DNA from: Corallochytrium limacisporum Hawaii
Lineage: Eukaryota > Protista > Pluriformea
Direction of reading: 5' to 3'
Length of the DNA: 64,000 nucleotides
Assembly: GCA_002811645.1 (NCBI GenBank)
Contig: PDIP01000067.1
Span: 54,550 to 118,549 of the forward strand
The notes below the pieces were generated by a model. It saw only the letters and a list, made by a program, of their open reading frames with translations. It made no database searches and was not told the DNA's origin. Of the stretch, positions 1 to 41,370 are shown in pieces (the stretch's first letter is position 1; every line of letters begins with the position of its first letter). A program made the translations under genes and the position numbers.

Positions 1-971
1 AAACGAAGCTTTCAAACCATAATGTAAATTATGCACTTTTTTATTGAACAGAGGTTGGTACGTCTTTGTGTATTGCAATCTTGGGGGAGTGTGTTGAAGG
101 GGAGGGGGGGGGGAGGATGAAAATGAAGGAGAAGGGGGGGGGTTTAGATCCTGGGTCTCATTTCCTCACGCCCCTCCCGCATCTTTGCTTCCTGTTCCTC
201 TTCCACGATCCGTAGCAGAAAGAGAGGAAAAAATTTATCCACAACGCGCATCCGGGAATATAGACTCCAAATAATTTCAATAGGCGATCTATTGGAAAAC
301 CCAAATGACGCACGGGCGGGAACTTTTTGGACTGGGTAAGCACTGGAGACAGCATTCGGGCTGGCGTGTCGCTAGTGTGCGGGTGTGTCGTTGCCTTCGA
401 CTGAAAACTGTCCAGTGTCGCATTGGCGTGCGCAGTTTTGGCGGTACATCGGTGTAGAAGGAAGCGGAGTATACCAATGGTACTTGTTGTGCCAATTTCA
501 AGACGGAATCCGCTGTGCAGCAGCTGTTGTGTACAATTCTATACCACCGTATAATCACAAGGGTGTATCTGATCAATTAGAAGATGACTCCAGCCCCACT
601 GGAGACACACGCGGATAGATATCCCGACGAGGTGAGGGAGTGCGCAGCCTCCCCCGGCTATCCCCCGTGAAGGACAGGTGGGGCCGGGGGGAAGAGGGGG
701 GGAAGGACTGGCAGCCAGTCGCAGACATACGCAGACTCTACAGCTCATAAACTGAATTGCGGCATCGGCTCCTGTGCCTGACCGATGGATGATTGGTACA
801 TTCAGGGACATATTTACAAAGCAAATGAGATGTATACATTTACATGAGCAGGTCAAGGAGCAGTACGTAGGTATTTAATTGCTTTTCTGTGAGGATAACT
901 CGGGGCCTCAGTTTTCTTCTGCCAACCTTGTTCAACCCGGATCTGCGTATTTTCGCTTCATGTCTAGCACC

Positions 972-2314
972 ATGTACAGACACAACTTCGTCTACGGTCT
1001 TGTTCTCGCATCTCTGTCCTCTCATACGCTGGCATTCTCTTCAGCAGAGCACAAAGCCATTGGAGATGGTCTCAATTTGCGGTTCCTCTCGGATCCCACT
1101 GATCCCCATTCCGAAACCGTTGAGCGTTTGGCCGGCGACTACCCTCTAATCGATGTTCCCGATGTAGGCACCATTACTTATGGTGACCTTGTTGCTGCCC
1201 CCGACTACTTTGGTCTGCCTAGCGATCCGCTGGCTGACTCCGATGACAATGACAGGGACATGGAGACGCGCGCCCAGGGGTGGTTCCAATCCTGGTACCA
1301 AATCATGGATGGCAAGAATGAGTTTGGTTTCGGATCCAAATCATACCAAAACCTCATTTTCAACAAAATCTATCCCACCGAGAAGGAGCATGCCTTCCAG
1401 GCCATTGCTGAAGGCAAGGATCCAGCCATTAACTGGCCCTCTTGGGAGAATGAACTGCGCCTAATGACAGCTCTCAGAGACTGGGACGCCTCTACCTACC
1501 TGACCCTGGAGGGTCACAACATTGACCACTGCCAAGACCACGGAGATGCCAAGAAGGCCTACAGGGCCATGCGACTGCTGGCCCTCCAGACGGCCCTAGA
1601 AGCGGGTCGGAACAAGCAGGAAGACGGACTGCGAATGGCATACATGATGAATGCATTTGCGGATCACTTCCTCAGCGATCAATTCGCTTCCGGACACACG
1701 CGCGTGCCTCGCAGGAAGCTCATGGATGTCCTTGGACCCGACTGTGGCGGACAATGGACCTTGAAGGAGCATGACTATGAAAATGAGGTTGGATTGTTGC
1801 TCCAGAATCAAAATGAGACATGGCGTGCCAGGGGTGACAAAGAGTATTTCACCGACAAGAACGCAGCTCATCTCGCCGTGCCAACGCGACCGTGGCCGTA
1901 TCAGCGCAGGGTGTCTTCGATATGTACCTTGGTGCGATGCGTGGGGATCCGATTGACATCGACGATCCCAAATGGTTTGAGGCCTGGGACTACGTTCCCA
2001 GCTCAGACCTTTTCCAGAATTTCCCGCCTCTGTTCAAGGTGGCCGATGACGGTACTCTGTTGATTCGCAGCTCCATTACCGACATTTACGAGCGAAACTA
2101 TGTGCCAATGGGCGACCACAGTTTTCTGCTATGTGAGATGAAGATGGAGTGGGACGGACATAAACTGAAGGATCGCGAGTACAAGGGTGATGTCTGCAGT
2201 GATGAAATACCATGCGCTAATGGCAACAAGTGCTCTGACAGTGAATACGGTACTTGTGGTGTGACCCCAGACACCAGTCGACGCCGCCGCAATGTGGAGG
2301 ACATGGGCTTCTGA
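972..2314 (+). CDS. Secreted zinc-dependent phospholipase C (Legionella PlcA/PlcB, Pseudomonas PC-PLC-like) with a one-base frameshift near 1874 and a small Cys-rich C-terminal module
   Basis: Signal peptide MYRHNFVYGLVLASLSSHTLA, then FSSAEHKAIGD, YGDLVAAPDYFG, HNIDH, NAFADHFLSDQFASGH, HDYENEVGL, WRARGD. ORF 879-2063 joins ORF 1892-2314 by a -1 shift at CTC/CGC (about 447 aa when reconstructed). Confidence 0.72.
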
Positions 2315-3838: not shown

Positions 3839-5956
3839 ATTTGGGATGGCCATTCGTCAGACATTTGCCCTGTGGCAGCTAGAGACTTCACTCGTCACCG
3901 TCCCAATGCTTCCTCCCTCGCTCCGGAAGGGCGGCCCAGCAGTGGCGATGAGTTATCCAATGAAGAAAATAAACAAAAAAATTAACAGCTGGTGGGGTCA
4001 GTGACACGGCATCGGCCAGCAGAAGCGTTTGCTCATCATTGAATCGTGCAAACACTGCCCTTTGTCCCAAAATTAGACACCCACAGCTGTTCATTATTTT
4101 CGTCAGCAATCGACAAACTGCACAATATACGAGTGAGCCCCCACTGTGGACACCCGCGATCCGATCTTGTTCACAATACCCGCGGTCCGATGCGCATGTC
4201 GCTTCACCGCCGCGTTCAGCAAACGTCAAGGCCACCTGCAGTAAGTCAGGGTACCAGATGGTGTACAGTGCGCAACGAAGAGGAGTCCGAATCGAGAGTC
4301 CGCGGCCCGTGCGAACTGAACACAAAAGGAGGGTGTGACGTACTTGTGGGTCCCTTTGCCGATAGAAAATGCCCCGCTGAAGCAATGGGCCATCGGTCAG
4401 GCTACAGGCAGAGCACTACCACCTGTCTTCCACCGCAATCGCCGGCCTAGCGCCCCTTTCCTTACCCATTTGCCTCCCCTTCCTATCCTGGCCCTCACAC
4501 CGATGCCCTGTCGGTATATTCGCTATAGACTTCCACCCTGTTCATTACTATCGGATTCAATATTTCAATAACTTCGTGATCTTGATTGGGGGAAGGGGGG
4601 ACATTGTAAATAATAGACTCCCATTGGGCCCCCCAGCGGCCAGCCCTTCCCAACGATCCGAAGTTCAAAGTTGGGGGAGGGGGTGGCACGGGTGGGGGGG
4701 GGGCTCGAGGCTGCTGTGCCATTGGCTGTGAGCTCGCTTGCTGCCTGCTAACACTGGAACTGAGTGAGTACCTGACCGTTCGAAATTGGAACCCCCCCCG
4801 GTGGGGTTCACTTTGTGAAAGGGAAGTACCAGTGGTACCGTTGATTGGGGGGGGAGGAGGTTAGATATCGCAGTTTGAATGATAACAGGGAACCAAAGAA
4901 GAAAGGAATCAAGAGGACAGGTGGTAGGCACTGACACCAGCTGAATTCACAGAGCGATGGACGCAAAGGGCAGGATACTCAAGACAGGCGAAAGAAAAAA
5001 CAAAGGAACACAACTGTATTTCCCGAGACAAACACGCCACCACCACGGCCATGCCACAACAAGTTTGGTCGTTTTCTTGCCCCCTTCCCCATATCCTTTC
5101 TACCATCGCTCCGGCTTCTTCTTTATCGGTTCCACCGTCCTCTGCAGATACATACTCGTACGTACTATTACAACCCAAGCACTGGCGAGTGTCTCCATTT
5201 GGTGTTGGATGGTTGGGGTGTTGCTAGTTCCTGTTGCTCCCTGTTCTGTTCCGTCGTTTGCTCCATTTCGTTCCACGGGACACCTACACTCTCACCACTC
5301 AGACTGCGGTGTTGTCCAGTGGTGCCGCTGTTGCTGTGTTCTCGTGCATGAGAATATTCGACCCAATGTTCGACCCCGTACTACCACTAAACGTTGTTAC
5401 CACTGGAATCTTCGGCAGTGTCACAAGGCGGCGGGCACAACACCACTGTCCCCACCACAACCAACCAACAGGGAGACCTAATAAGAGGGGGCTGGACAGA
5501 CCGCCATAGCATATGAGAGGGGCCAAAAGCGGTGTGAGGCGGCCATCTCACTTGGAATAGTAACTCAGTGCGAGTGGCTTTGCTGAGAAAGGAAAGAGAG
5601 TGTGGGAGATGAGGCGATGGTGTGAGTTTCAGAGACAGTCGCATGAGCACAGAAGTGCTTTTTAGATGTTTGGCCATTTTAGCAGCGTGGATGGTTGTTA
5701 CAGTTTCAAGAAATGGACAACAAATGGACACCCAACACAGCTAGCTGTAATTGCACTGCTCTGAATTGATGGGTATAAGGGCACTGATATTGCAATGACT
5801 TAGGATACGTTTGGTGATAGACCTGGTTGCTAGTTCACGAAACATCCAAGGACCACGACTTTCGGAGCAATTTATGGCTATGGAATCTGGCATGAAAAGC
5901 AACAGTTCACTAGTGGATAGAGGATAGGTTACGATAAGGACAAGTTTGCTTTGTTC

Positions 5957-7420
5957 ATGGGTTGCAACGGGTCCAAAAACCTTCCAGTGGAGCAGCCCCC
6001 GAAGGACCCGAACAGCGAAGACGAGAACAACGACCCTCGCAACGGCTCTGATCCAGCTGGTCAGTCAAAACAGAACCTCGCCGACGACCACTTCGAAAAG
6101 GACAACATGGGTGGCGGTCAGAGTAAGGACCAAACGGTCGCCAAGGCCAAGTCAATGCTTAGCACAGCTGAGTACAGATGTGTTTGTGAGGCATTTGAGA
6201 ACCTTACAGGAAACTCCAAGGATCCTGATGCTGCTATCACAAAACGCCAGTGGGTGAATTACATAACCACTCTCAGTGTGCCAGTGGGTGCTGGCTTCTT
6301 TGATGCTTTTTTGAGCACAGGACCGCCCCTAGACGAAGATCCTGGCACGGTCATCAAAGGCATGCCCTTCAGTGCATATCTAATGGGATGCGCAATATTC
6401 CTTAGTCGCAACGTGGAGAAGATCAGTCTGCTGGTGGCACGTATGCTCATCGGTGAAAATGTGCAGTTCACCATGGAAAGGCTGGCAGAACTTTTGCAGG
6501 CACTGATCGCGTCGGCAATGAACATGGATGAGACGGCGGAATCGGCGGGCAGGTTGGCGCAATATTTCCTGGAGCGCATTAAGAAGTATGAGCAGGAGGC
6601 AGAGACGCATACTGTGGTACCCACACATGGCATCACCACTCTGGCACGGTTGGAACCCATCTTTTGCGACATACTGTACGTTATTGTCTCACAAAGCATC
6701 ATTGCTCCCTTCAGTACCAGTGCCCAGGACGTACTCTCTGCACCGGCCCTGTCACCTAACATGAAGGGCGGTAGTGGTATGGGACTACTGGACACGCCAA
6801 TGGCCTCACTACTGTCCTACCAAATGTCTGCCGAGTGCCGCAAACGGTGGTCAGTGGTCTACAGCCGCCGCAAGGATGGAGCATCCTTTGCCAAGTTCCA
6901 GCAGACCCTTCTGAAGAGTGGACAGTGCGTTGTGGTGATTCGTGACAGGGGTGGATTCGTGTTTGGATGCTACAACTTCACTCGCTGGAGGCAGGCTGCA
7001 CAATTTTACGGGGACAGTCGATCTTTTGTGTTCAGTGCGAAGCCGAAGGTAGCCATCCATACCCCACAAGGACATAATGACAACTACATGTACCTGAACT
7101 TTGGACAGCAGACCCTGGCAAACGGGTTTGGTGTGGGTGGACAGATGGGCTATCATGCAATTTGGATTGACCAAAACTTTGAAGATGGGCACTGCAAGGG
7201 CAATCCGAGCACAACGTATGGAAATCCTCAATTCACAGAGAACGAAGAATTTGAGGTTGCAGATATTGAAGTCATTGAGGTGTGCCCGCCGCCCAAGGAT
7301 GAGGACGAGGAAGATGGCGCCGGCACCTCCATCTTGGACAAGGACCAAGAAACGAACCTGGTTATGGAACTAGCCGGACGTGGACAAAAGTCAAAGCACA
7401 TTCGGCAAGCAAAGGATTAG
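5957..7420 (+). CDS. MEAK7: N-acylated TLDc-domain protein (MEAK7/TLDC1-like)
   Basis: Starts MGCNGSK (myristoylation/palmitoylation pattern); C-terminal TLDc motifs DGASF, GFVFG, FYGDSRSFVF, NDNYMYLN, STTYGNPQF. Confidence 0.8.
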   Translation: MGCNGSKNLPVEQPPKDPNSEDENNDPRNGSDPAGQSKQNLADDHFEKDNMGGGQSKDQTVAKAKSMLSTAEYRCVCEAFENLTGNSKDPDAAITKRQWVNYITTLSVPVGAGFFDAFLSTGPPLDEDPGTVIKGMPFSAYLMGCAIFLSRNVEKISLLVARMLIGENVQFTMERLAELLQALIASAMNMDETAESAGRLAQYFLERIKKYEQEAETHTVVPTHGITTLARLEPIFCDILYVIVSQSIIAPFSTSAQDVLSAPALSPNMKGGSGMGLLDTPMASLLSYQMSAECRKRWSVVYSRRKDGASFAKFQQTLLKSGQCVVVIRDRGGFVFGCYNFTRWRQAAQFYGDSRSFVFSAKPKVAIHTPQGHNDNYMYLNFGQQTLANGFGVGGQMGYHAIWIDQNFEDGHCKGNPSTTYGNPQFTENEEFEVADIEVIEVCPPPKDEDEEDGAGTSILDKDQETNLVMELAGRGQKSKHIRQAKD

Positions 7421-7545: not shown

Positions 7546-9462
7546 CTAGGTCGCAGATGACGATTTCTCCTTGGTCTTCTCCGAATCTGTTTCGTAGTCC
7601 CTGTGCATCATCTGCGCCATCACCTCTTGTCGATCTGTCCGGGACCTGAATGCATTGGACTCCATTGCGGCTTCCCACTCGTCCTGCTTATGAGGTGCCG
7701 CCTGACCAGCAGGGGCTGTAAAGTCTGGCTCCCGTCGCTTCTTGGCCTGGTCTTCTAAAGTCGTTCGACAATGCAAGGGCTCCAGCACAGGCTTCAAGGC
7801 CTCGAGGTAGCGCTGCAGAAGTCTCTCGCCGCCCATGCCATCGATAGCGCGACGAAGGTTCTTATAGTGACTGAACCGTGCGCCCTCATCGGTCATGAAT
7901 CGGTACAGTACATCTGTCGTGTCGGCGGCATCCCGAACCACCAGCGTGCGGTTGGCGCTGTCAAAATTGAGGTGGTCTACAATTTCCTTGAAGTTGGCCA
8001 TGTGCGGTCCGTGAAGGACAATAGAGCCGCTTCGAACCGCTTCAATAAAATTGTGACCACCTATGCCTGGCTGCAGAGATCCTCCAACAAAAGTTGCATC
8101 TGCAAGTTGGTAAAACAGTGATAGTTCACCCAAAGTGTCCACAATGTACACGTCCACGCCGTCCCGAATCGGCTCTCGTTGGCTGCGACGGGCACACCAA
8201 AGATGGTACTTATTGGTGAGCTCTTTTGCAATCGCTTTACCACGTTTCGGGTCACGTGGAGCAATGATGGTCAATGGGTTCGCTAGGTGCCGCTTCTGCA
8301 GTTCTAAGTGGACATTGGCGCACATATCTTCCTCACCTGAGTGCGTACTCGCTGCCAGCCAGACGTGACGTCGCTTTAGTTTGCGCTCCAGCAAGTCTCG
8401 TTCTACCTCGTCACAAGGCAAGTTTGGTGCACTCAATTTGAGATTGCCAATATACGCACTATTGGTGAGTTCAAGGTCAATGTAACGGCGCAGATCCTTT
8501 CGGCTGGCAGCCAGAATGACTTCGTATTCAGACAGCAGACCACGAACTGCACTACGCAGCGGCCAGCGCTGCCAGAGGCTCATGCTGCGCTTACTCATGC
8601 GCCCGTTCACCACTGCTACAGGAACTGCCCGATCAATGGTGGTGCAGAGCAGATTCGGTGTAACATCTGGCTCGAAAAGCAGCGCAGCATCCGGATTCCA
8701 ATGGTCCATGAACCGTTTTACGTATGCCGGTATGTCATAAGGCGCATACTGAATGCAGGTCCGGTCGGGCAGCTTCGGTGCCAGCACATTGTACGATGAC
8801 ACACTGTTTGTGGTCATCAGTACATGCAAGTCTGGGTAGCGATTGACTAAGGTCTTGACCAGGCCAATACAAGCTACCGCTTCACCAACGTTTGCACCAT
8901 GGACCCAGAGCAGTGGATGCTTGCCGTCTGCGGGAGGCCGTTCCACCGTCGTTAGACCGTAGCGGTTCTGAAACCGCTCCGGCTCTGTGTCTTCCAGGCC
9001 CTGGTCTTGTCTCCGTCTGGCGTAGAACGGCGGAATCAATGGCGTAGCCATGGCTGTGAGCGCGGTGTATACTTTGAATACCCAGTGGCGGCGACTGAGG
9101 AACATCATCCCAAATGTGGAATCCGTCAAAGACGCGGTTAAACTAGTCGATTTTTCTCCCCTGGCTTTTGATCTGCTATTAGAACCTACGAACTCTTCCT
9201 TTGATCCTCCTTTCGGTGGTCCCCACAACCCTTTCTTTTTGACTCCTGCCATTCTCTGTCCTGCCACCTGTCTCTGTTTTTTAATTCTACCTGGATACGC
9301 CCCTGCCGAGCGGATACCTCCGGCTCCTTGGTTCGGATCATCATCGAAGGCCGTTGCATAAGGACGAAGACTGTGCAACACACCAACGACAGATCCAGTT
9401 GGGAGGTGTTTTCCAGCGGTGCTCCGTCCTAGCTTTGCAGCAGTTGATGCCAACTGGAGCAT
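7546..9462 (-). CDS. kdtA: 3-deoxy-D-manno-octulosonic acid (Kdo) transferase, GT30, with mitochondrial-type presequence
   Basis: WVHGANVGE, QYAPYD, NGRMSKRS, GNLK, WLAASTHSGEE, IIAPRDPKRG, DTLGEL, FVGGSL, GGHNFIEA, GPHMANF. The N-terminus is basic, rich in hydroxylated residues and free of acidic residues up to RPYATAF. First ATG at 9462. Confidence 0.92.
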   Translation of the reverse strand: MLQLASTAAKLGRSTAGKHLPTGSVVGVLHSLRPYATAFDDDPNQGAGGIRSAGAYPGRIKKQRQVAGQRMAGVKKKGLWGPPKGGSKEEFVGSNSRSKARGEKSTSLTASLTDSTFGMMFLSRRHWVFKVYTALTAMATPLIPPFYARRRQDQGLEDTEPERFQNRYGLTTVERPPADGKHPLLWVHGANVGEAVACIGLVKTLVNRYPDLHVLMTTNSVSSYNVLAPKLPDRTCIQYAPYDIPAYVKRFMDHWNPDAALLFEPDVTPNLLCTTIDRAVPVAVVNGRMSKRSMSLWQRWPLRSAVRGLLSEYEVILAASRKDLRRYIDLELTNSAYIGNLKLSAPNLPCDEVERDLLERKLKRRHVWLAASTHSGEEDMCANVHLELQKRHLANPLTIIAPRDPKRGKAIAKELTNKYHLWCARRSQREPIRDGVDVYIVDTLGELSLFYQLADATFVGGSLQPGIGGHNFIEAVRSGSIVLHGPHMANFKEIVDHLNFDSANRTLVVRDAADTTDVLYRFMTDEGARFSHYKNLRRAIDGMGGERLLQRYLEALKPVLEPLHCRTTLEDQAKKRREPDFTAPAGQAAPHKQDEWEAAMESNAFRSRTDRQEVMAQMMHRDYETDSEKTKEKSSSAT

Positions 9463-10268
9463 TGTGTTATGTTTTGTTCGAAATGCTTTCACTCTTAGGT
9501 CTCAGAATGCGTTGAGGTCGCCACAGACAGACTAAGAAGGCCGCTCTTGTTGTACCTTCTTCTAGTCGAAACACTTGCCCGGGGGATTGTGAATCAGGGC
9601 CGGTGGCGCCCCTTCCCCGTCACCTTCCCTCCATCTCTCATTCCAAAACCGCCCCCCTTGCAATTTTCTTCCCAGTCTCGCACTCTCGCTGTGCGCCATG
9701 GCTCTCTGCCTCAGTTCTCCGTTCCAATGCCTTGCGTTTGTTGGGGGGTGGGGGGGGAGTAGTTGGTTAACCCGGTCGGCTTGCTCTCCCTCTCTCCGTC
9801 TCCACTGCGTGAATTCCATGGGGGCCTATTTGCCGGGAAGGGAATGCCACCCGTCTGGAACCAAGGGGCCGAGTGGGACCGTCCACTCCCCGCCCCTCCG
9901 GGACGGTCGAGTGTGTGGAGTCTGTTCGGAGACCCGCGTGGCTGGGCGGGCGGGTTCAACGCCAAGTGGGCTAGAGAGTTTTACTATGTGCCTCAGCGCA
10001 TTGGAATTGGGTTTCATCGCCTTTATTTGCATTTGTATCGAGTACTCGTGTCTTGGACCGTTTCAGGTATTTAACAATTTGAGTTTTGAAGTAGATATTT
10101 AGACAAGAGGATGGATCGAATCAGATGTTGGCTCATGGTGCCATGTTTCGGAACAGACTGGGGAAAATCTAAACCATGTGAGAAGCACATTGGATAAAAG
10201 ACAATTAAGATTGACGAAATTGATACCCAAGCTCGGTTATTCAACCCTTGCCCGAAATACGAATAGCA

Positions 10269-12242
10269 ATGAATGATTCGTTCTTTAGAGTGGCCCGTAG
10301 CGGCGGGTCAAAGCGGCTGGCCAAGACTTCGCAGTCAAAGGGGGGCGGCCGCGGAAGATCCAAAACGAGCGGTAACATAAGTAAACCCAGGCGTTATGAA
10401 AACGAGACCGACAATGTTTCAGATGACTACGTAGATGATGAGGATGACGATCTGGGGGTAACCTTTGACAGTGACGACGAAGAAAGGAGAAAACGGGATC
10501 GGGCCGACGGCTCTGAATACGACGATGACACCGAAGATGAGAAGGAGACAGCGCAAGAGAAACGTATTCGGCTGGCCAAAAGCTACCTTTCCAAGCTCGC
10601 TGCTGATAAAGATGAATACGGAGAGGACCGGGACGTCGACGCGGAAGTGGCTATCACCCGACGCCTAGCAGATGACGCCCTTGACCGTAAAGGCCGGCTT
10701 GTGCGGTCAGTTGCTGGAGAACTGGAACCACTGTTCACGGATCCCAAAGACGAGAACGATGTTCTAACACTTGACATTGCACGCTTTACTCGAGGTCATC
10801 ACCGCAGTCCGACGTGCATCGCCGTGGACGCAAACGGGACTGTGGCCTTCACAGGGGGTAAAGACGCAGCGATAGTGCGCTGGGAGCTCAAGGATGGCAT
10901 GCCATGTCGCACACACTTTGTTGAGGGAAAACCGAGTGCAACGCAGCTCAAGAAACGGCAACTCAAGCGTGAACGCGCGCTACAAGCGCAGCTAGCAAGG
11001 CGCATTAAGTCTGAGGGTCTGTTGCCTGATCAGGAGCAAGCAGAAACGATGAAGCGGAACAAGGCCGTGGAGAGTCGCAAGGTCGATAGAGACACCAAGC
11101 CCGCGGACAGAACTAGTAGTGGCCATGCAGGCGCCGTATTTGCAATCGCTGTTCACGGTTCTGGCATGTCCGACCGAGGCATTGTAGCCAGCGGCGGCGC
11201 AGATGCGATTATCCGTCTGTGGCGTGCCACAGACTTATTCCCGCTGGGTACTCTAGATGGGCATCGTGGTGCAATCACAAGTCTTACTTTCCGCCTCGAC
11301 TCTGCCGCCGACCCTCAAGGCACACTGTATTCCACATCGAGGGACAAGCTTTGCAAAGTCTGGTCTGCTGTGGACCAGAGCTATATCGAAACTCTCTTTG
11401 GGCATCAGGAGCCTGCGCAGTGGGTCGCCGCGCACCCCCACCGTGAGCAATGCCTCACTGCAGGCGGTCAGGAGCGCTGCTTGCGGCTTTGGAAAATCCC
11501 AGAGGAGAGCCACTTAGTGTTTTTGCTAACGAATGTGGGGGCAGAGTGCTGTTGTTTTGTGGGCAACGGGGACCATTTCGTGAGCGGTGGTGATGACGGG
11601 AGCATCAGTCTGTGGAATGTGTCACGCAAGAAGCCTTTGGTTACAGTGCGACCCGCACACCACGACCAAGAACAAGGACGAAACGATCGTGAAGATAGTG
11701 AAGACACTGACGAGGGAGATCACTCGAATACAGTGGACATGGAGGACAACGACGGCGACGATGATGAGCAAGAGAGTGTTGCCAACTCGAAGGCTACTCA
11801 GGACCTCCGCCTCAACGGAGCCATTATTGGCCACCAGTCTGCCAACCTGGATTATTCCGCCGCCGATCCGCGAGACCCGCGTCTGAGCTCATTACTCAGT
11901 AGCAGTTCCTATGCTGCAGCAAATGCCGATCGTGAGCTGCATGGGACCATGCCGTGGGTCACTGCGCTGGCCGCAGTACCGAAGAGCGATCTTGTCGCGT
12001 CCGGTTCAAGCGACGGTTTGGTCAAGCTCTGGCGCGTGGACACTGAGGGCCGATCGTTGGATGAGATAGGTTGCATTGCCGTCAATGGCTTCATCAACGG
12101 CCTTGCCTGGAGCAGCACGATGCCCCCGCGCCTAGTCGCGAGCGTGAGTCAGGAGCATCGATTTGGTCGCTGGGAGAATTTGAGAAAAGTAAGGAACGGA
12201 ATGGTCATGGTGGATTTCAAAGACCTTTTGAAAGGCAAGTGA
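10269..12242 (+). CDS. RRP9: U3 snoRNP WD40 protein U3-55K/Rrp9
   Basis: ETAQEKRIRLAKSYL, WD40 repeats, SYIETLFGHQ, RLWKIPEESHLVF, QEHRFGRW. Confidence 0.93.
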   Translation: MNDSFFRVARSGGSKRLAKTSQSKGGGRGRSKTSGNISKPRRYENETDNVSDDYVDDEDDDLGVTFDSDDEERRKRDRADGSEYDDDTEDEKETAQEKRIRLAKSYLSKLAADKDEYGEDRDVDAEVAITRRLADDALDRKGRLVRSVAGELEPLFTDPKDENDVLTLDIARFTRGHHRSPTCIAVDANGTVAFTGGKDAAIVRWELKDGMPCRTHFVEGKPSATQLKKRQLKRERALQAQLARRIKSEGLLPDQEQAETMKRNKAVESRKVDRDTKPADRTSSGHAGAVFAIAVHGSGMSDRGIVASGGADAIIRLWRATDLFPLGTLDGHRGAITSLTFRLDSAADPQGTLYSTSRDKLCKVWSAVDQSYIETLFGHQEPAQWVAAHPHREQCLTAGGQERCLRLWKIPEESHLVFLLTNVGAECCCFVGNGDHFVSGGDDGSISLWNVSRKKPLVTVRPAHHDQEQGRNDREDSEDTDEGDHSNTVDMEDNDGDDDEQESVANSKATQDLRLNGAIIGHQSANLDYSAADPRDPRLSSLLSSSSYAAANADRELHGTMPWVTALAAVPKSDLVASGSSDGLVKLWRVDTEGRSLDEIGCIAVNGFINGLAWSSTMPPRLVASVSQEHRFGRWENLRKVRNGMVMVDFKDLLKGK

Positions 12243-15772: not shown

Positions 15773-16687
15773 CTAGTCACGCGGGAAGATGTACGTTTTC
15801 ATGAACTCGTATACTGTAAAGCTCACACTCACCTGCGGCACGGCCTTGATGTAGTTCAAACTTAGTCCGCGGTAGAGCGCTAGGAACCCTTCCTGTCGCC
15901 AAACTAGTCCAATGGACCGCACCGTACCTTCGTAATGCGATTTGACCGACCCTTCCATGCCCTCCACCTGCATTCTGCGTCGCACCACATCAAAGGGATA
16001 GCTGCCTGTCTGTGCGACCAGACCTGCTACCGATCCGCTCATCATGTTCATGATTGCTGTGGTACCATGGCCTGCATTCTGGTTCCATTCCCGTGACTTG
16101 GCTTTCAGCACCTCAAAAGTAAAGAAACTCAGTCCTGCGTACGGAATCATACCCCAAATTGTAGGCAGGAAGCCACGGTACAGTCCCCCAATACCTTCGT
16201 TGCGCACAGTCTGGACAATCACATCACTGATGCCCGAGTACTGTTTGACTTTAGTCTGAAACGCCAGCCGGGCCCGAACCACGTCAAGCGGATACGTCGT
16301 GCTGACCGAAGTGATTCCAGCCATAGAACCCGCCAAGAAATTGTGATATGATCCGGTCAGACCGAGTTCATAGTGTAGTAAGTGCTTGTACGTCTCAAAG
16401 CTCAGAAACTGGACGCCAGCATAGGGAAATATACGCACAATCTGTGCTCCGTTACCCTTGTAGTAACCCATCAGCCCTTCATATTTCATTACTTTCATGA
16501 ACGCACGCGGCAGGCTCAGATCTGCATAGTGGGCATTGTGTGCCTGCAATAGAATCTTCACTCTGTCCATGGGTGCAACTACGGTTTTGGCGCAGCACCC
16601 AGCGACACCGCCGTTGACCAGTGTCTTGGCCACGTCCGTGGCATTACGAGCGAGGCTGCTCTTTGTTCCACTGTCGGACATGCTCAT
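15773..16687 (-). CDS. SLC25A16: Mitochondrial carrier, CoA-transporter subfamily (SLC25A16/SLC25A42/Leu5-like)
   Basis: Three PxDxxK/R motifs (APMDRVK, YPLDVVR, YPFDVVR); GGVAGCCAKT, KILLQAHN, RIFPY, GMIPYAG. Confidence 0.88.
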   Translation of the reverse strand: MSMSDSGTKSSLARNATDVAKTLVNGGVAGCCAKTVVAPMDRVKILLQAHNAHYADLSLPRAFMKVMKYEGLMGYYKGNGAQIVRIFPYAGVQFLSFETYKHLLHYELGLTGSYHNFLAGSMAGITSVSTTYPLDVVRARLAFQTKVKQYSGISDVIVQTVRNEGIGGLYRGFLPTIWGMIPYAGLSFFTFEVLKAKSREWNQNAGHGTTAIMNMMSGSVAGLVAQTGSYPFDVVRRRMQVEGMEGSVKSHYEGTVRSIGLVWRQEGFLALYRGLSLNYIKAVPQVSVSFTVYEFMKTYIFPRD

Positions 16688-18336: not shown

Positions 18337-20040
18337 ATGTCTACTCCTCGTGCCAATATGAAAAACCCAGAGACGATTCTTAATGCTTCTGAGTGGGGCC
18401 GAGAAGAGACCAATGAGGACGACACAATCAGCGGTTCCGCCACTCCGGCAAAACTCTCTGCGAAAATGCAAGCAAAGCTGCGAGACAGCGTCAATCGCTA
18501 CAATGGAGCCCAAGGTTCTAGGTCGGCAGGAGTAGCAAACAACAGTCCAAGCCCACAGTACAAGTCAGTATCCGACCTGGCGTCAGAGTCACACAGCGAG
18601 ACACGGATGTCTCTACAAAACATCTTCGCGGCAACAGTCGAGGACAACCGTCAGCGGGAGGGTATGCTCAAGACCGCAATTGAGCGCGGATACCAACTAG
18701 CTCTCTTGGGTTTGGTCTTTGCTCTGGTGTATGGTAATTTTCTCATGCTCCTAGACTTTGTGAATCCGGTGTTGCTAGCCTTTTTTGTAGCAACAGCACT
18801 CCGGACTCTGAATCTGACCTTGCGGGATGTCTGCTTTTGGGTACGCTCTTGACATTTGAGCGGAATGAGGGGCTACACTCTGCTCGCAATTACTAGTGTG
18901 ATCACAGCAGGGGCACTAACGGTTGAAAAGACAGCAATTCCTCAGTGGTTCCCGCTGTCTGAGGCAATTCTGGCTCTGCTGACTGCGGATCTCGCCCTTG
19001 TTTGTCTCCTTTTCCTCGACGATGCCAACGCGAGCGCCAGCTTTGTAACGCTGGGGCTGATTGTTGCTGTGGCGGGTCCGGTAAGTTTTGTGGCCCTGAC
19101 CTGTAAGGACGAGGCGATCGAACTACAGCACCATGTCCAGCAAATCACCTCCAAGGCGTCCTCTGACGTCGGTGCGCTGATCGGTACTGTGCGGTCCACG
19201 CGCCAGTATGAGCGATTCATGGAGGCAGTGGAACCGCTGGGACTGGTCACGGACGCGGATGTCGTGGAATTCGCTGCCAACAAGGCTGAATTGCAACGCA
19301 TGCTCAACGAGGCGGGTACGGCGGTGTCGGAGCGTGCCTTGACCTTCTTTGGTTCGGCAGTGAGCTTTTTGGGATCATTGGGATCCTTGCTCGGTGATTC
19401 GCTCGTCTTCTTGTCAGTGCTCTACTATCTCCTTGCCTATCAGCAAGCACTGGAGCGGGAACTAGAGCGATTGGTACCTATTCCCATCAAGGATGCACGC
19501 ATGATTGGGCGTACAGTGCATCGGAATGTGCGGGAAATGTTTGCGTCTGTTGGGCTCGTTATCGGATTGCACTTCACGGTGAGCTACGGACTGTTCTCGG
19601 TGACGGGTATGATCGCGCCTATGCTGCTGGCCACTCTATGCGGGGTGCTGGCCCTGATTCCAGTCATCAGTTCGTGGATCATTTGGGTGCCGGCCGTGCT
19701 GCTGCACTATGCTGTCACCGGACGGACTCTGGACGCTGTCATTATTGTCGTCGGTGAGCTGGTGGTTGGGTATGTCGCTTCGTACAGCTTCCTTTTGATG
19801 AAAGAATCACATTACTACGTTGTGGGGATGTCGCTGGTGGCTGGATTCGGACGATACGGCTCAATTGGTGTGTTATTGGGACCTGCTCTATGCACGGGTT
19901 TGATGATTCTACGCAACATTGTGCTAGCATACAGACGCACAGAGTTCACGCCGCGCAGGGGATTTAGTGGACCAATTAATCCTGCCACTGCGTCTCCTCA
20001 TCACCACCACGATAGTCACGGTCATAGTGACAAGAAATAG
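18337..20040 (+). CDS. AI-2E/TMEM245-family multi-pass membrane protein, interrupted by an in-frame TGA at 18850-18852
   Basis: Two same-frame ORFs (18307-18852 and 18856-20040). N-terminal TM pair with FVNPVLLAFFVATAL; C-terminal FLSVLYYLL, LALIPVISSWIIWVPA, GSIGVLLGP typical of AI-2E/TMEM245. Confidence 0.75.
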
Positions 20041-39558: not shown

Positions 39559-41370
39559 ATGTTGCGTATTGGAACCCCTAACCTTCGGTTCATTACACAA
39601 CTCCTGCGCTCGGCAGCAACAACACCACCCGCAAGGAGTTATCACATCATCACAGGACAGACTCAGTGTAGTTCTTCCTCATTCTTGAATACTGCCAGCA
39701 ACAGTAAGAGAACTATTATTGCCCGCAACCTCAGCATCAGAACCATGTCAACCATCAGCGCTAAAGTAGCTAAGGTTGGTGATCTGGCCCCCAACACCAT
39801 GAAGGAGGTCGAGGTCGGCGACTACAAGGCCCTCCTGATTAACGACAACGGCGAGTATCGCGCTCTTGGTCACAAATGCTCTCATTACGGTGCACCCCTG
39901 GCCAAAGGTGTGCTCAGTGCAGGCCGTGTGCGCTGTCCCTGGCACGGTGCCTGCTTCAGCGCCAAAACCGGCGACATTGAAGACTTCCCCGGTAACGAAT
40001 GTGTGGAGAAGTTTGCGGTCAAAGTCGAGGGCGACGACGTTGTGGTCAGCGGTGAGAAGGCTTCATTCGAGCGGGCACTACGCACTGCGGTCCACGCTGC
40101 CGGCGACGGGTCTGATGAGCGTGCTTTCGTCATTGTCGGAGGCGGGCCAGGTGGCTGCATTGCGGCCGAAACACTGCGCAAGGGAGGCTTCCAAGGCAAG
40201 GTGATCATGCTCACGCAGGAGGCTAACCTGCCGTATGACCGAGTCAAGCTGAGCAAGGCTATGAACATTGACGTCGAGAAGATCACACTGCGGGACCAGA
40301 CCTTCTGGGACGAGATTGGCGTGGAAGTGCGCACGGGTGCGGAGGTCACAGAGCTTGATCCTGCTTCCAAGACCATCAAGCTTGCGGACGGCTCTAGTTT
40401 AACCTACGACGGCTGTCTAGTTGCAACTGGAGGCAAGCCTCGCGTACTGCCCATCGGCGGCACCGATGGGTGCTCTGTCTATACCCTGCGCAGCCCGGCG
40501 GATGCCTCTAAACTGTGGGCTGAAGCTGAGGGTAAGAAAGTCGCCATCCTTGGTGCCAGTTTCATTGGCATGGAGAGCGCGTCTGCCCTTCACAAACATG
40601 CTGCAGAGGTGCACGTGATTGGACTGGAGAAAACACCTTTTGAGAACATTCTGGGCCAGACAGTGGGCGCTAGCATCCAGAAGCTGCATGAGGAAAACGG
40701 TATCAAATTCCACTTGTCCAAGGCTGTGGATGTGATCCACCGGACAGACGGCAAGATTTGTAGTGTAAAGCTAAAGGATGGGTCTGAGGTGCCGGCCGAT
40801 GTTGTTCTCATGGGGGTCGGTGTCGTGCCGAACACGGGCTTTGTGAAGGCCACTGGTGGTGTGGAGATTGGCAAGGACGGTGGCATTACTGTAAGCGCCG
40901 GCATGAAGGCTGCTGACGGTCTGTGGTGTTCTGGTGATATTGCGCGCTACCCATTCCATCTTGAGAACGGTGCTCCTGTCCGAATTGAGCACTTCCAGAT
41001 CGCCGAGAAGAGCGCCTCCATTGCGGCCAAGGATTTCCTCGGCAAGGAGGGCGCCGTTATGCAGAGCGTACCTTACTTCTGGACTGTCCAGTATGGCAAA
41101 TCATTCCGGTACACAGGCCACGGTGTCGGTTTCGATGACATTGTCTACGAAGGTTCCGTCGAGGAGGGCAAATGGGCTGCGTTCTACGCCAAGCAGGGCA
41201 AGATCATTGCCGTTGCGTCCCTGGGATACGATCCCATGGTCAGCCGCTGTGCTGAACTGTTTGGTTTGGGACTGATGCCCACTGCTGAGGCTGTGAAGGC
41301 TGGAGGCGTCGACTGGGCTGCTCTTGACAAACAGATTGCTGCTGCGGGAAAGGTAAGCAGCAGTCTTTGA
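39559..41370 (+). CDS. AIFM3: Rieske [2Fe-2S] plus FAD/NADH oxidoreductase (AIFM3-like)
   Basis: CSHYGAPL and CPWHGACF Rieske ligands; VIVGGGPGG, LPYDRVKLSK, GASFIGME, RIEH, VPYFWT; N-terminal presequence. Confidence 0.9.
   Translation: MLRIGTPNLRFITQLLRSAATTPPARSYHIITGQTQCSSSSFLNTASNSKRTIIARNLSIRTMSTISAKVAKVGDLAPNTMKEVEVGDYKALLINDNGEYRALGHKCSHYGAPLAKGVLSAGRVRCPWHGACFSAKTGDIEDFPGNECVEKFAVKVEGDDVVVSGEKASFERALRTAVHAAGDGSDERAFVIVGGGPGGCIAAETLRKGGFQGKVIMLTQEANLPYDRVKLSKAMNIDVEKITLRDQTFWDEIGVEVRTGAEVTELDPASKTIKLADGSSLTYDGCLVATGGKPRVLPIGGTDGCSVYTLRSPADASKLWAEAEGKKVAILGASFIGMESASALHKHAAEVHVIGLEKTPFENILGQTVGASIQKLHEENGIKFHLSKAVDVIHRTDGKICSVKLKDGSEVPADVVLMGVGVVPNTGFVKATGGVEIGKDGGITVSAGMKAADGLWCSGDIARYPFHLENGAPVRIEHFQIAEKSASIAAKDFLGKEGAVMQSVPYFWTVQYGKSFRYTGHGVGFDDIVYEGSVEEGKWAAFYAKQGKIIAVASLGYDPMVSRCAELFGLGLMPTAEAVKAGGVDWAALDKQIAAAGKVSSSL

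Follow-up and report, generated by a model that had tools for sequence, protein, structure and literature searches.

An intact nuclear WaaA/KdtA homologue without recognisable lipid A/Kdo partner genes in the assembly of a holozoan protist

Introduction

What might a bacterial envelope enzyme do in a close relative of the animals? The question is raised by a gene of the GT30 WaaA/KdtA family that lies in a stretch of 64,000 nucleotides from the assembly of Corallochytrium limacisporum Hawaii (contig PDIP01000067.1)—hereafter the window, to whose first letter all positions refer. Outside bacteria, the literature discusses nuclear KdtA for plants and green algae, within a mitochondrial lipid A-like pathway of undefined product and purpose. 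For opisthokonts, no report of the GT30 KdtA family was found in the literature, nor any paper joining Kdo and Holozoa, and two papers on the Corallochytrium genome and on horizontal gene transfer (PMC5560861, PMC13345962) are silent on this gene. A first-pass annotation of the window had proposed a mitochondrial lipid A-like pathway, with a repurposed enzyme as its fallback. Here, we describe the gene, its setting, its relatives and its missing partners, and weigh the explanations for its presence.

The gene and its genomic setting

The longest open reading frame at the locus (7546–9492) encodes 648 residues from a GTG start. Its first ATG, at position 9462, corresponds to residue 11, and all residue numbers of the homologue given here follow the 648-residue frame. 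The gene, its parts and its neighbours are collected in Table 1. The public gene model P0001 comprises 501 residues and starts at M148 (position 9051); because this start falls within the helix of residues 129–160, the model truncates the N-terminal helix.

Table 1. Positions of the WaaA/KdtA homologue, its predicted parts and its flanking genes within the window.
Feature	Residues	Positions	Strand	Remarks and evidence
TLDc/MEAK7-like gene, N-terminal MGCNGSK motif		5951..7420	plus	PF07534 1.1e-35; 7u8o mEAK-7 6.9e-45
WaaA/KdtA homologue CDS, GT30		7546..9462	minus	Intronless, 638 aa from first ATG; stop 7546-7548; ORF list, start-codon scan, Pfam, NCBIfam
Presequence-like N-terminus	11-45	9358..9462	minus	Composition, R-3-type cleavage motif, low-pLDDT helix; rule-of-thumb reading
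Basic Gly/Ser/Lys-rich linker, predicted disordered	46-128	9109..9357	minus	pLDDT <50, composition
Amphipathic, moderately hydrophobic helix, corresponding to bacterial WaaA start	129-160	9013..9108	minus	NCBIfam match from residue 136 (profile position 7); conserved Tyr142
GT30 N-terminal (acceptor-side) domain	173-353	8434..8976	minus	PF04413 6.4e-43; 2xci alignment; holds G203/E204, S230, E274, K352
Asn201 codon	201	8890..8892	minus	Ser in 509/512 homologues, both algal proteins included
Thr278 codon	278	8659..8661	minus	Replaces Trp (Aquifex W102); Trp in 512/512 homologues
C-terminal CMP-sugar-binding domain	372-535	7888..8379	minus	Conserved R413, G455, N481, E484; 4bfc match by sequence and fold
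Charged C-terminal tail	591-648	7549..7722	minus	Composition; pLDDT 40-72; absent from bacterial WaaA
RRP9/U3-55K WD40 protein gene		10248..12242	plus	7mq8 U3 snoRNA-interacting protein 2 8e-68; Rrp9 5oql 2.7e-47

The MEAK7-like gene is convergent with the WaaA gene, with 125 bp between them, and the RRP9 gene is divergent from it, their start codons lying about 0.8 kb apart. The first-pass annotation had held these eukaryotic neighbours to argue against contamination, and matches to 7u8o and 7mq8 confirm both of them as flanking genes (6.9e-45 for MEAK7-like; 8e-68 for RRP9). Its reading of the host as an apparent holozoan likewise fits, the assembly being 24.1 Mb in size and free of introns, as published for Corallochytrium limacisporum. 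The published assembly derives from an axenic culture and covers 83.4% of BUSCO genes. At third codon positions, the GC content (GC3) of the core of the gene is 0.58, as compared with 0.58–0.70 in host genes and 0.90 in the nearest bacterial gene; correlations of relative synonymous codon usage (0.58 for the core vs 0.57 for E. coli waaA and 0.69 for a bacterial homologue) are uninformative on foreign origin, and GC3 alone is useful here. The WaaA homologue is an intact gene that resides in the nuclear genome of a holozoan protist, and this protist is most probably Corallochytrium limacisporum.

Family identity, fold and conserved residues

The locus encodes a GT30 homologue of the WaaA/KdtA family with the two-domain GT-B fold. 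The Pfam profile PF04413 (Glycos_transf_N) is matched at 6.4e-43, with 146.8 bits against a gathering cut-off of 23.9, and aligns over nearly its entire length (profile positions 2–177 of 179, residues 173–353). Five NCBIfam models of lipid IV(A) Kdo transferases match residues 136–585 (best 2.7e-88); their alignments cover the whole profile, and all five stay below the curated equivalog cut-offs (best 296.6 bits vs 617). The AF2 model of the protein shows pLDDT values above 90 in the core, and Foldseek returned as top matches Aquifex WaaA (2xci, 1.7e-19) and the CMP-Kdo-binding domain of Acinetobacter WaaA (4bfc)—the latter also being matched by sequence at 2.7e-18 and by fold with a TM score of 0.89 over the C-domain.

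On the level of single residues, the complete set of GT30 WaaA motifs that had been noticed at first pass is indeed present: VGE corresponds to G203/E204, the Glu of FEPD to E274, NLK to K352 and PR to R413. The GGHN..E motif is likewise found, with N481 and E484. Counted over 512 homologues, to which all residue counts given here refer, G203, E204, D253, E274, K352, R413, R417, G455, N481 and E484 occupy invariant or near-invariant positions. For Aquifex WaaA, roles in catalysis or CMP binding have been assigned to G30, E31, E98, K162, R212, N273 and E276 (PMC6286764), and the equivalents of all seven are kept (G203, E204, E274, K352, R413, N481 and E484). Among the highly conserved bacterial columns, the protein retains 60 of 73; two algal KdtA proteins retain 62 and 60.

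The motif deviations remarked upon earlier (ANVGE, EPDVTPN and PRDPKR) proved to be real and unusual. The first places N201 where 509 of the 512 homologues carry Ser; the second comprises P275, D276 and T278, the last at a position that is Trp in all 512; the third places D414 where His is found in 495. [quoted passage not shown] The equivalent of S28 is N201 and that of W102 is T278; among S28, S54 and W102, only S54 has a compatible equivalent, namely S230. Judged by these alignments, the donor-binding and catalytic residues are intact while the motif deviations hit residues assigned to lipid IVA binding.

The N-terminal extension

Ahead of the start equivalent to that of bacterial WaaA (M129/M130) lie 118 residues (11–128) with 19 Lys and Arg against seven Asp and Glu, which bears out the basic extension of about 100 residues described at first pass. 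Its frame is free of stop codons, as is the case in only 0.14% of shuffles. The GC3 of the extension is 0.42, against 0.58 in the core, and the extension could be untranslated.

A presequence-like character had also been ascribed to the N-terminus. By rules of thumb only, this description holds: the 39 residues from Met11 to residue 49 contain no acidic residue, and an R43-P44-Y45/A46 motif follows the pattern of a cleavage site. Residues 11–50 carry a net charge of +3 plus two His, their composition having been set against that of the 18 other open reading frames of the window, and AF2 places a helix of low pLDDT at model residues 2–14. Taken by such rules, the N-terminal 35 residues resemble a mitochondrial presequence. 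A similar N-terminus is seen in an AIFM3-like gene of the same window.

The helix of residues 129–160 reaches a best 19-residue Kyte–Doolittle average of 1.12. A reading of this segment as a type II transmembrane anchor was rejected because its hydrophobicity is too weak.

Relatives and ancestry

The closest relatives of the protein are alphaproteobacterial WaaA proteins with 43–48% identity, and among about 15 billion proteins, neither word searches nor an exhaustive HMMER search returned any that is closer than 48%. The best matches sit in msbA-DUF374-waaA-lpxK-lpxL operons. Homology searches yielded bacterial-type proteins and two eukaryotic ones, P0204 (eukprot) and P0465 (Spirogloea muscicola). 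Further candidates were singled out by an N-terminal offset: P0357 was rejected as a eukaryotic relative since it sits in a bacterial operon, P0371 since its contig, high in GC and carrying a frameshift, is bacterial, and ten others are metagenomic or, where named, alphaproteobacterial. A search seeded with P0204 returned bacterial-type proteins only, those that bear a name being from Alphaproteobacteria, and plant sequences were absent from its results. The eukaryotic rows of the trees are the Corallochytrium protein, P0204 and P0465; Arabidopsis KdtA was left out.

A tree with alphaproteobacterial and algal KdtA, of the kind proposed at first pass, places the protein in an alphaproteobacterial-type clade (100/99) that also contains named Alphaproteobacteria and both algal proteins and leaves E. 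coli, Acidobacteria and Planctomycetes outside. This careful tree has 64 rows. A quick tree of 101 rows was poorly searched, and our conclusions rest on the 64-row tree because the constrained 101-row tree scored 65.9 log-likelihood units better. Within the 64-row tree, the protein stands weakly beside Spirogloea (83/0) in a group of six rows (84/89). Monophyly of the three eukaryotic proteins—three long branches, with only two eukaryotes besides Corallochytrium—is not rejected by the AU test (p 0.445 for 64 rows, 0.926 for 101 rows). The end branch of the Corallochytrium protein (1.59) exceeds the median of 0.8, and the amino-acid make-up of the protein deviates. Such a long branch and deviant make-up are compatible with relaxed constraint.

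The trees thus support an ancestry of alphaproteobacterial type, as for plant and algal KdtA. Both a lineage-specific transfer and an ancient acquisition common to algal and plant KdtA would be compatible with them, neither being shown nor rejected. A published list of mitochondrion-derived eukaryotic families includes kdtA (PMC4198247).

Missing partner genes

To search for the pathway, the whole assembly was scanned in six frames for its families. In these scans, no match to LpxA (C-domain), LpxC, LpxD, LpxB, LpxK or LpxL was found in the published assembly (BUSCO 83.4%), and family scans of the same genome gave no match to KdsA (KDO8P synthase model), NeuB or DUF374. As positive controls, the scans recovered WaaA itself, two AroFGH DAHP synthases and one CTP_transf_3 gene. 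This single cytidylyltransferase gene, which is fused to a dehydrogenase, resembles CMP-NeuAc synthetase (4e-11), PseF (1e-15) and KdsB (about 1e-7 to 1e-11) similarly weakly, leaving its specificity ambiguous.

No other recognisable gene of a lipid A/Kdo pathway accompanies the WaaA homologue in the assembly. The lipid A-like pathway put forward by the first-pass annotation is therefore not borne out, with LpxA, LpxC, LpxD, LpxB, LpxK, LpxL and KdsA all undetected; the annotation itself had named a lack of further Lpx and Kds genes as grounds for giving that pathway up, and none was detected in the genome bar the one ambiguous CTP_transf_3 gene. Since the partner genes are absent, the enzyme probably has a different role. 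With neither KdsA nor NeuB found and the cytidylyltransferase ambiguous, an active CMP-ulosonate transferase would hence be one without a demonstrated substrate supply.

Discussion

The explanation we favour, and to which we would give roughly an even chance, is that of an orphan and probably repurposed enzyme: an active CMP-ulosonate transferase with a new acceptor, delivered to an organelle. The fallback of the first-pass annotation, namely repurposing for a new acceptor, thus turns out to be the better fit, as the deviations concern lipid IVA residues and the donor and catalytic residues are intact. The homologue would still act as a monotopic GT-B enzyme at a membrane surface, presumably with a CMP-activated ulosonic acid as donor. 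The sugar might be passed to an acceptor other than lipid IVA, which would therefore make the enzyme a repurposed one. The N-terminal extension may route the protein to an organelle; as with plant KdtA, the mitochondrion is the likeliest destination. Either the single ulosonate-type cytidylyltransferase gene or salvaged Kdo could supply the donor; Kdo made de novo would be precluded because KdsA is absent.

A doubtful, though serious, rival is a non-catalytic relic left behind by a pathway since lost or by an isolated transfer, which would have a structural or moonlighting role or be decaying, and would not transfer glycosyl groups in vivo. Neither a donor nor an acceptor pathway was found, the protein sits on a long branch and is of odd composition, two invariant residues (Trp and Ser) have been lost, Asp takes the place of His414 beside the phosphate-binding Arg, and no relative above 48% identity is at hand to demonstrate purifying selection. 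However, the frame of 638 codons is intact with host-adapted codon usage, all catalytic and CMP-contact residues are kept, conserved columns are retained to the same degree as in the presumably functional algal KdtA, and the core fold is predicted with pLDDT above 90.

Also unlikely is an enzyme of the secretory pathway, in which a basic cytosolic tail and a signal-anchor helix would hold the catalytic domain in the ER or Golgi lumen, where it would decorate a wall or surface glycan with ulosonic acid. The succession of basic tail, hydrophobic helix and catalytic domain is indeed that of type II Golgi glycosyltransferases, Corallochytrium is walled and osmotrophic (PMC13345962), and CMP-Kdo is used in the Golgi by plants and prasinophytes. 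Yet the moderately hydrophobic helix (1.12) matches the monotopic helix of bacterial WaaA and is no clear transmembrane anchor, the extreme N-terminus better fits a presequence, and the Golgi Kdo transferases known so far are members of GT29 rather than GT30.

A more specific scenario, for which we see a slim chance, takes the gene as the last remnant, in an opisthokont, of a mitochondrial Kdo-glycolipid pathway that passed from the alphaproteobacterial endosymbiont to the first eukaryotes; plant and algal KdtA would stem from the same acquisition, as the trees allow. After loss of the Lpx and Kds genes, the enzyme would have been retooled (Asn201, Thr278) to place a CMP-activated acidic sugar on another mitochondrial membrane lipid. 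In that case, the mitochondrion of a holozoan would contain an as yet undescribed kind of glycolipid.

That the gene is the lipid IVA Kdo transferase of a persisting, plant-like mitochondrial lipid A/Kdo pathway is very improbable. The family and its alphaproteobacterial-type ancestry are those of algal and plant KdtA, the N-terminus is presequence-like and the assembly is incomplete (BUSCO 83.4%). Nevertheless, seven independent families (LpxA, LpxC, LpxD, LpxB, LpxK, LpxL and KdsA) went undetected though the positive controls were found, to miss all seven by chance would be very unlikely at a completeness of about 83%, and both replaced residues (N201 and T278) are at positions assigned to lipid IVA binding. 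Finally, an assembly artefact—contaminant bacterial DNA mis-joined into a eukaryotic contig, or a chimera—can hardly be entertained and was rejected: the nearest relatives are bacterial, but the frame is contiguous with the MEAK7-like and RRP9 genes 125 bp and about 0.8 kb away, no bacterial protein among about 15 billion exceeds 48% identity, GC3 is host-like, the N- and C-terminal extensions are non-bacterial and the sequenced culture was axenic.

An intact KdtA in a close relative of the animals, without partner genes and changed at the lipid IVA contacts, amounts to a natural experiment. It illustrates either the way in which a bacterial envelope enzyme acquires a new acceptor in a eukaryote or the length of time over which a gene from an endosymbiont or from a transfer can survive as an orphan. 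Should the gene prove orthologous to plant KdtA, the ancestral eukaryotic mitochondrion would have had a Kdo-lipid pathway, lost many times since. If it stems from a lineage-specific transfer, its value would be mainly biochemical, as a GT30 enzyme with a new substrate.

Comparison with known systems

With bacterial WaaA/KdtA (E. coli; Aquifex aeolicus, PDB 2XCI/2XCU), the Corallochytrium protein has in common the GT-B fold, the N-terminal helix at the membrane surface and the G-E, E, K, P-R and G-G-H-N-x-x-E motifs. In contrast to the bacterial genes, it is encoded in the nucleus outside any lipid A operon, and the protein adds an N-terminal extension of 118 residues—bacterial WaaA having no counterpart of the linker of residues 46–128—and a C-terminal tail of 58 residues.

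The nuclear KdtA of plants and algae (Arabidopsis At5g03770; Spirogloea muscicola P0465; eukprot P0204) is closer in kind: it is also nuclear and of alphaproteobacterial-type ancestry, the algal proteins are similar in conserved-column retention and branch length, and P0204 likewise bears a presequence-like N-terminus. However, the algal proteins still carry Ser and Trp at the invariant positions where the Corallochytrium protein has N201 and T278, and plants keep LpxA, LpxC, LpxD, LpxB and LpxK as well as KdsA, KdsB and KdsD, whereas the Corallochytrium assembly is without a detectable Lpx set or KdsA.

A further parallel is offered by the CMP-Kdo transferases of the plant Golgi (GT29, e.g., Arabidopsis MGP2). 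These form an unrelated family with which no sequence relationship is expected, and the likeness is one of function only: they, too, are eukaryotic enzymes that use a CMP-ulosonic acid as donor and serve an acceptor other than lipid A, as the Corallochytrium enzyme may do.

Family, fold and genomic setting

Read as one uninterrupted frame without introns, the WaaA gene spans 648 codons counted from a mechanical GTG start; the first ATG, at 9462, encodes residue 11 and is also the start chosen by the first-pass annotation, leaving 638 residues. The product is matched by Pfam Glycos_transf_N (PF04413, 6.4e-43) and, end to end over residues 136–585, by five NCBIfam "lipid IV(A) Kdo transferase" models (best 2.7e-88), with all NCBIfam matches under the curated equivalog cut-offs. 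Sequence matches are found to both solved WaaA structures (4bfc, 2.7e-18; 2xci, 2e-14). An AlphaFold model with 43 aligned sequences as input has a core pLDDT above 90, and Foldseek ranks highest Aquifex WaaA (1.7e-19) and the CMP-Kdo-binding domain of the Acinetobacter enzyme (TM 0.89). Domain, fold and catalytic residues all place the protein in GT30.

The gene is flanked by a TLDc protein, whose top solved match is mammalian mEAK-7 (6.9e-45), and by an RRP9/U3-55K protein (8e-68). The first-pass annotation described a Kdo transferase with motif deviations between MEAK7-like and RRP9 genes, and this observation is confirmed in full. The assembly comprises 24,109,830 bases in 286 contigs, with the window on contig C250, and the long genes of the window are single uninterrupted ORFs. 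For Corallochytrium limacisporum, an axenic culture, a genome of 24.1 Mb with 7,535 genes, an intron density of 0.0 per kb of CDS and an assembly BUSCO of 83.4% were reported (Grau-Bové et al. 2017, PMC5560861). The sole database copy of the protein is in EukProt.

Two further genes lie less than 10 kb from it: one for a Mito_carr mitochondrial carrier protein (2.3e-75), the other for a homologue of AI-2E-family transporters (PF01594, 2.1e-18), called TMEM245-like in the first reading of the window. For an ORF first read as a bacterial-type zinc phospholipase C, a quick Pfam scan returned nothing at E <= 1e-4.

Coordinates of the features discussed (window positions unless a locus or contig is given)
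Feature	Position	Strand	Remark
WaaA open frame	7546-9492	-	648 codons
Met11	9460-9462	-	candidate start, first ATG
Met129	9106-9108	-	candidate start
Met148	9049-9051	-	candidate start, public model P0001
N-terminal stretch	9109-9462	-	118 codons
ORF	879-2063	+	
Mito_carr protein	15773-16687	-	
AI-2E-family homologue	18856-20040	+	
AIFM3-like protein	39559-41370	+	Rieske + Pyr_redox_2 + Reductase_C
CTP_transf_3 gene	L002:1348-3207 = G000:C186 about 354396-356255	+	619 aa, other contig
msbA-DUF374-waaA-lpxK-lpxL blocks	L007:7258-11683; L005:3460-9112		alphaproteobacterial relatives

Donor and acceptor sites

Residue roles were taken from Aquifex WaaA as given in a review (PMC6286764) summarising Schmidt et al. 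2012, and conservation was assessed first over 98 bacterial rows and later over 512 homologues. In the alignment, the positions for catalysis and CMP binding are all kept: G203/E204, E274, K352, R413, N481 and E484 correspond to Aquifex G30/E31, E98, K162, R212, N273 and E276, and D253, R417 and G455 are likewise conserved. Bacterial rows agree at 90% or more in 73 columns; the Corallochytrium protein keeps 60 of these, compared with 62 and 60 in two algal KdtA, and bacterial rows keep a median of 72, with a fifth percentile of 57.

The changes cluster on the acceptor side. Asn201 occupies the position of Aquifex S28—the proposed binder of the lipid IVA 1-phosphate (PMC6286764)—where 509 of 512 homologues have Ser, and Thr278 that of W102, a Trp reporting acyl-chain binding (PMC6286764) and present in 512/512 homologues, both algal proteins included. 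Pro275 and Asp276 are further substitutions nearby, and Asp414 stands where 495/512 homologues have His; all five fall within the deviating motifs (ANVGE, EPDVTPN, PRDPKR) listed in the first-pass annotation. An intact donor side, an altered lipid IVA side and a genome without lipid IVA genes form the pattern expected from an acceptor change, and from this combination we infer that the acceptor may have changed from lipid IVA.

Pathway partners

Family models were run against the whole assembly in six frames. In this ~83% complete assembly, no match was found for the LpxA C-domain (PF13720), LpxC (PF03331), LpxD (PF04613), LpxB (PF02684), LpxK (PF02606), LpxL (PF03279), KDO8P synthase (TIGR01362), NeuB (PF03102) or DUF374 (PF04028), the customary neighbour or fusion partner of waaA in Alphaproteobacteria. 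As positive controls, the same scan recovered one copy of the WaaA gene, two DAHP_synth_1 genes and the one CTP_transf_3 gene of the genome. Chance loss of all seven pathway families at ~83% gene-space completeness is very improbable. A lipid A-like pathway had been proposed, together with a search for lpx and kds genes; this search returned none of LpxA/C/D/B/K or KDO8P synthase and one ambiguous cytidylyltransferase. Measured by the refuting condition set out with that proposal, the WaaA gene is, on the ~83% complete assembly, an orphan and not part of a pathway.

Both DAHP_synth_1 genes are AroFGH DAHP synthases and are ruled out as KdsA. The CTP_transf_3 gene encodes an ulosonate-type cytidylyltransferase fused to a D-2-hydroxyacid (glyoxylate/phosphoglycerate-type) dehydrogenase, and the cytidylyltransferase half gives comparably weak scores with PseF (1e-15), CMP-NeuAc synthetases (4e-11) and KdsB (1e-7 to 1e-11). 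Neither KdsA nor NeuB was found in six-frame scans of the genome carrying this fusion.

Start site and N-terminal extension

In the NCBIfam alignments, the first residue covered, 136, pairs with profile position 7, and M129/M130 therefore matches the bacterial start. Public model P0001 (501 aa) begins at M148, within the conserved N-terminal helix and downstream of the conserved Tyr142; as this cuts into the WaaA fold, the annotated start lies probably too far downstream and the model is probably too short. Upstream of the bacterial-type start, the frame stays open to the first ATG—stop-free in only 0.14% of shuffles of the same bases, with stops in the two other frames. Its GC3 of 0.42, against 0.58 in the core and 0.58–0.70 in neighbouring genes, counts against translation. 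The stretch may be a young exapted coding sequence or an unusually open 5' leader.

If translated, it begins with the presequence-like N-terminus seen in the first pass: 39 residues from Met11 without acidic residues, a net charge of +3 plus two His over the first 40, a short helix predicted by AF2, and an Arg-Pro-Tyr\|Ala end, which we take to be an R-3-type mitochondrial processing motif. Residues 46–128 are basic and predicted disordered. Hydrophobicity of the helix after residue 128 is no more than moderate (1.12), as it is for the monotopic helix in alphaproteobacterial WaaA; the helix does not look like a clear transmembrane anchor. Of the window's 19 long ORFs, one alone, that of an AIFM3-like Rieske flavoprotein, starts more presequence-like. 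Mitochondrial targeting of the WaaA-gene product appears plausible, with the chances about evenly balanced.

The AIFM3-like protein, expected to be mitochondrial, has a 74-residue N-terminus without acidic residues that contains Arg-Ser-Tyr\|His—a local example of an apparent mitochondrial presequence in Corallochytrium.

Relatives and origin

Searching by words, and exhaustively with HMMER over 1.84 billion representatives of some 15 billion proteins, yielded 17,120 homologues. Identity reaches 48% at most by BLASTP, and 45% at most among the exhaustive-search representatives; the Corallochytrium protein is the lone member of its cluster. The best matches sit in bacterial msbA-DUF374-waaA-lpxK-lpxL operons, named, where at all, as Alphaproteobacteria, and the only eukaryotes identified among the best 150 are the algal KdtA P0204, an entry of EukProt (37%), and P0465 of Spirogloea muscicola (38%). 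The operon block is conserved in alphaproteobacterial relatives, where DUF374-WaaA fusions of ~640–690 aa are common and longer forms occur; proteins of this set are P0344, P0345, P0347, P0343 and P0352. P0343 has 768 aa, and P0352, at 866 aa, carries 460 extra residues at its N-terminus.

A tree, a step also suggested in the first pass, was calculated with IQ-TREE (64 rows, LG+C20+F+G4). It places the Corallochytrium protein and both algal KdtA inside an alphaproteobacterial-type clade (100/99) that leaves out E. coli, one acidobacterium and one planctomycete. Within it, the Corallochytrium protein groups, with weak support, with Spirogloea and a MAG from Alphaproteobacteria (83/0; group of six 84/89), and P0204 attaches to a long Rhodobacterales branch. 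A constraint that joins the three eukaryotes lowers the log-likelihood by 2.8 units (p-AU 0.445); for a 101-row set, the forced eukaryote tree even scored above the quick free one (p-AU 0.926). Since each of the three rows has a long branch, mutual attraction is possible. Three scenarios fit here: one ancient, mitochondrion-related acquisition, in line with the listing of kdtA among mitochondrion-derived families (PMC4198247), alga-to-protist transfer, or separate bacterial transfer. That the gene has long resided in the Corallochytrium genome is suggested by host-like GC3 in the core (0.58; nearest bacterial gene 0.90), by the added extensions and by the long branch.

Proposed function and comparison with known systems

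The intact GT-B fold, kept donor and catalytic residues, altered acceptor site, orphan context and nuclear residency suggest a membrane-surface glycosyltransferase of GT-B fold that would still use a CMP-activated ulosonic acid, now with an acceptor other than lipid IVA, and would probably act in mitochondria. The donor is the weak point of the proposal: no Kdo or nonulosonate synthesis genes are present, and the ambiguous cytidylyltransferase would have to supply it from a salvaged or unknown sugar. The main rival, a non-catalytic or decaying relic, shares the orphan context and is set against the kept catalytic residues; we consider it unlikely.

No paper linking Kdo and Holozoa was found in the literature searched, of incomplete coverage, and the Corallochytrium genome and HGT papers PMC5560861 and PMC13345962 do not discuss the gene. 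Compared with bacterial WaaA, the Corallochytrium protein stays under the NCBIfam equivalog thresholds, does not keep the lipid IVA contact residues S28 and W102 and lacks the pathway context; hence, the annotation "lipid IV(A) Kdo transferase" should be avoided for it. Plant and algal KdtA resemble it in ancestry and layout, whereas the Corallochytrium protein stands without any partner genes and bears a changed acceptor site.
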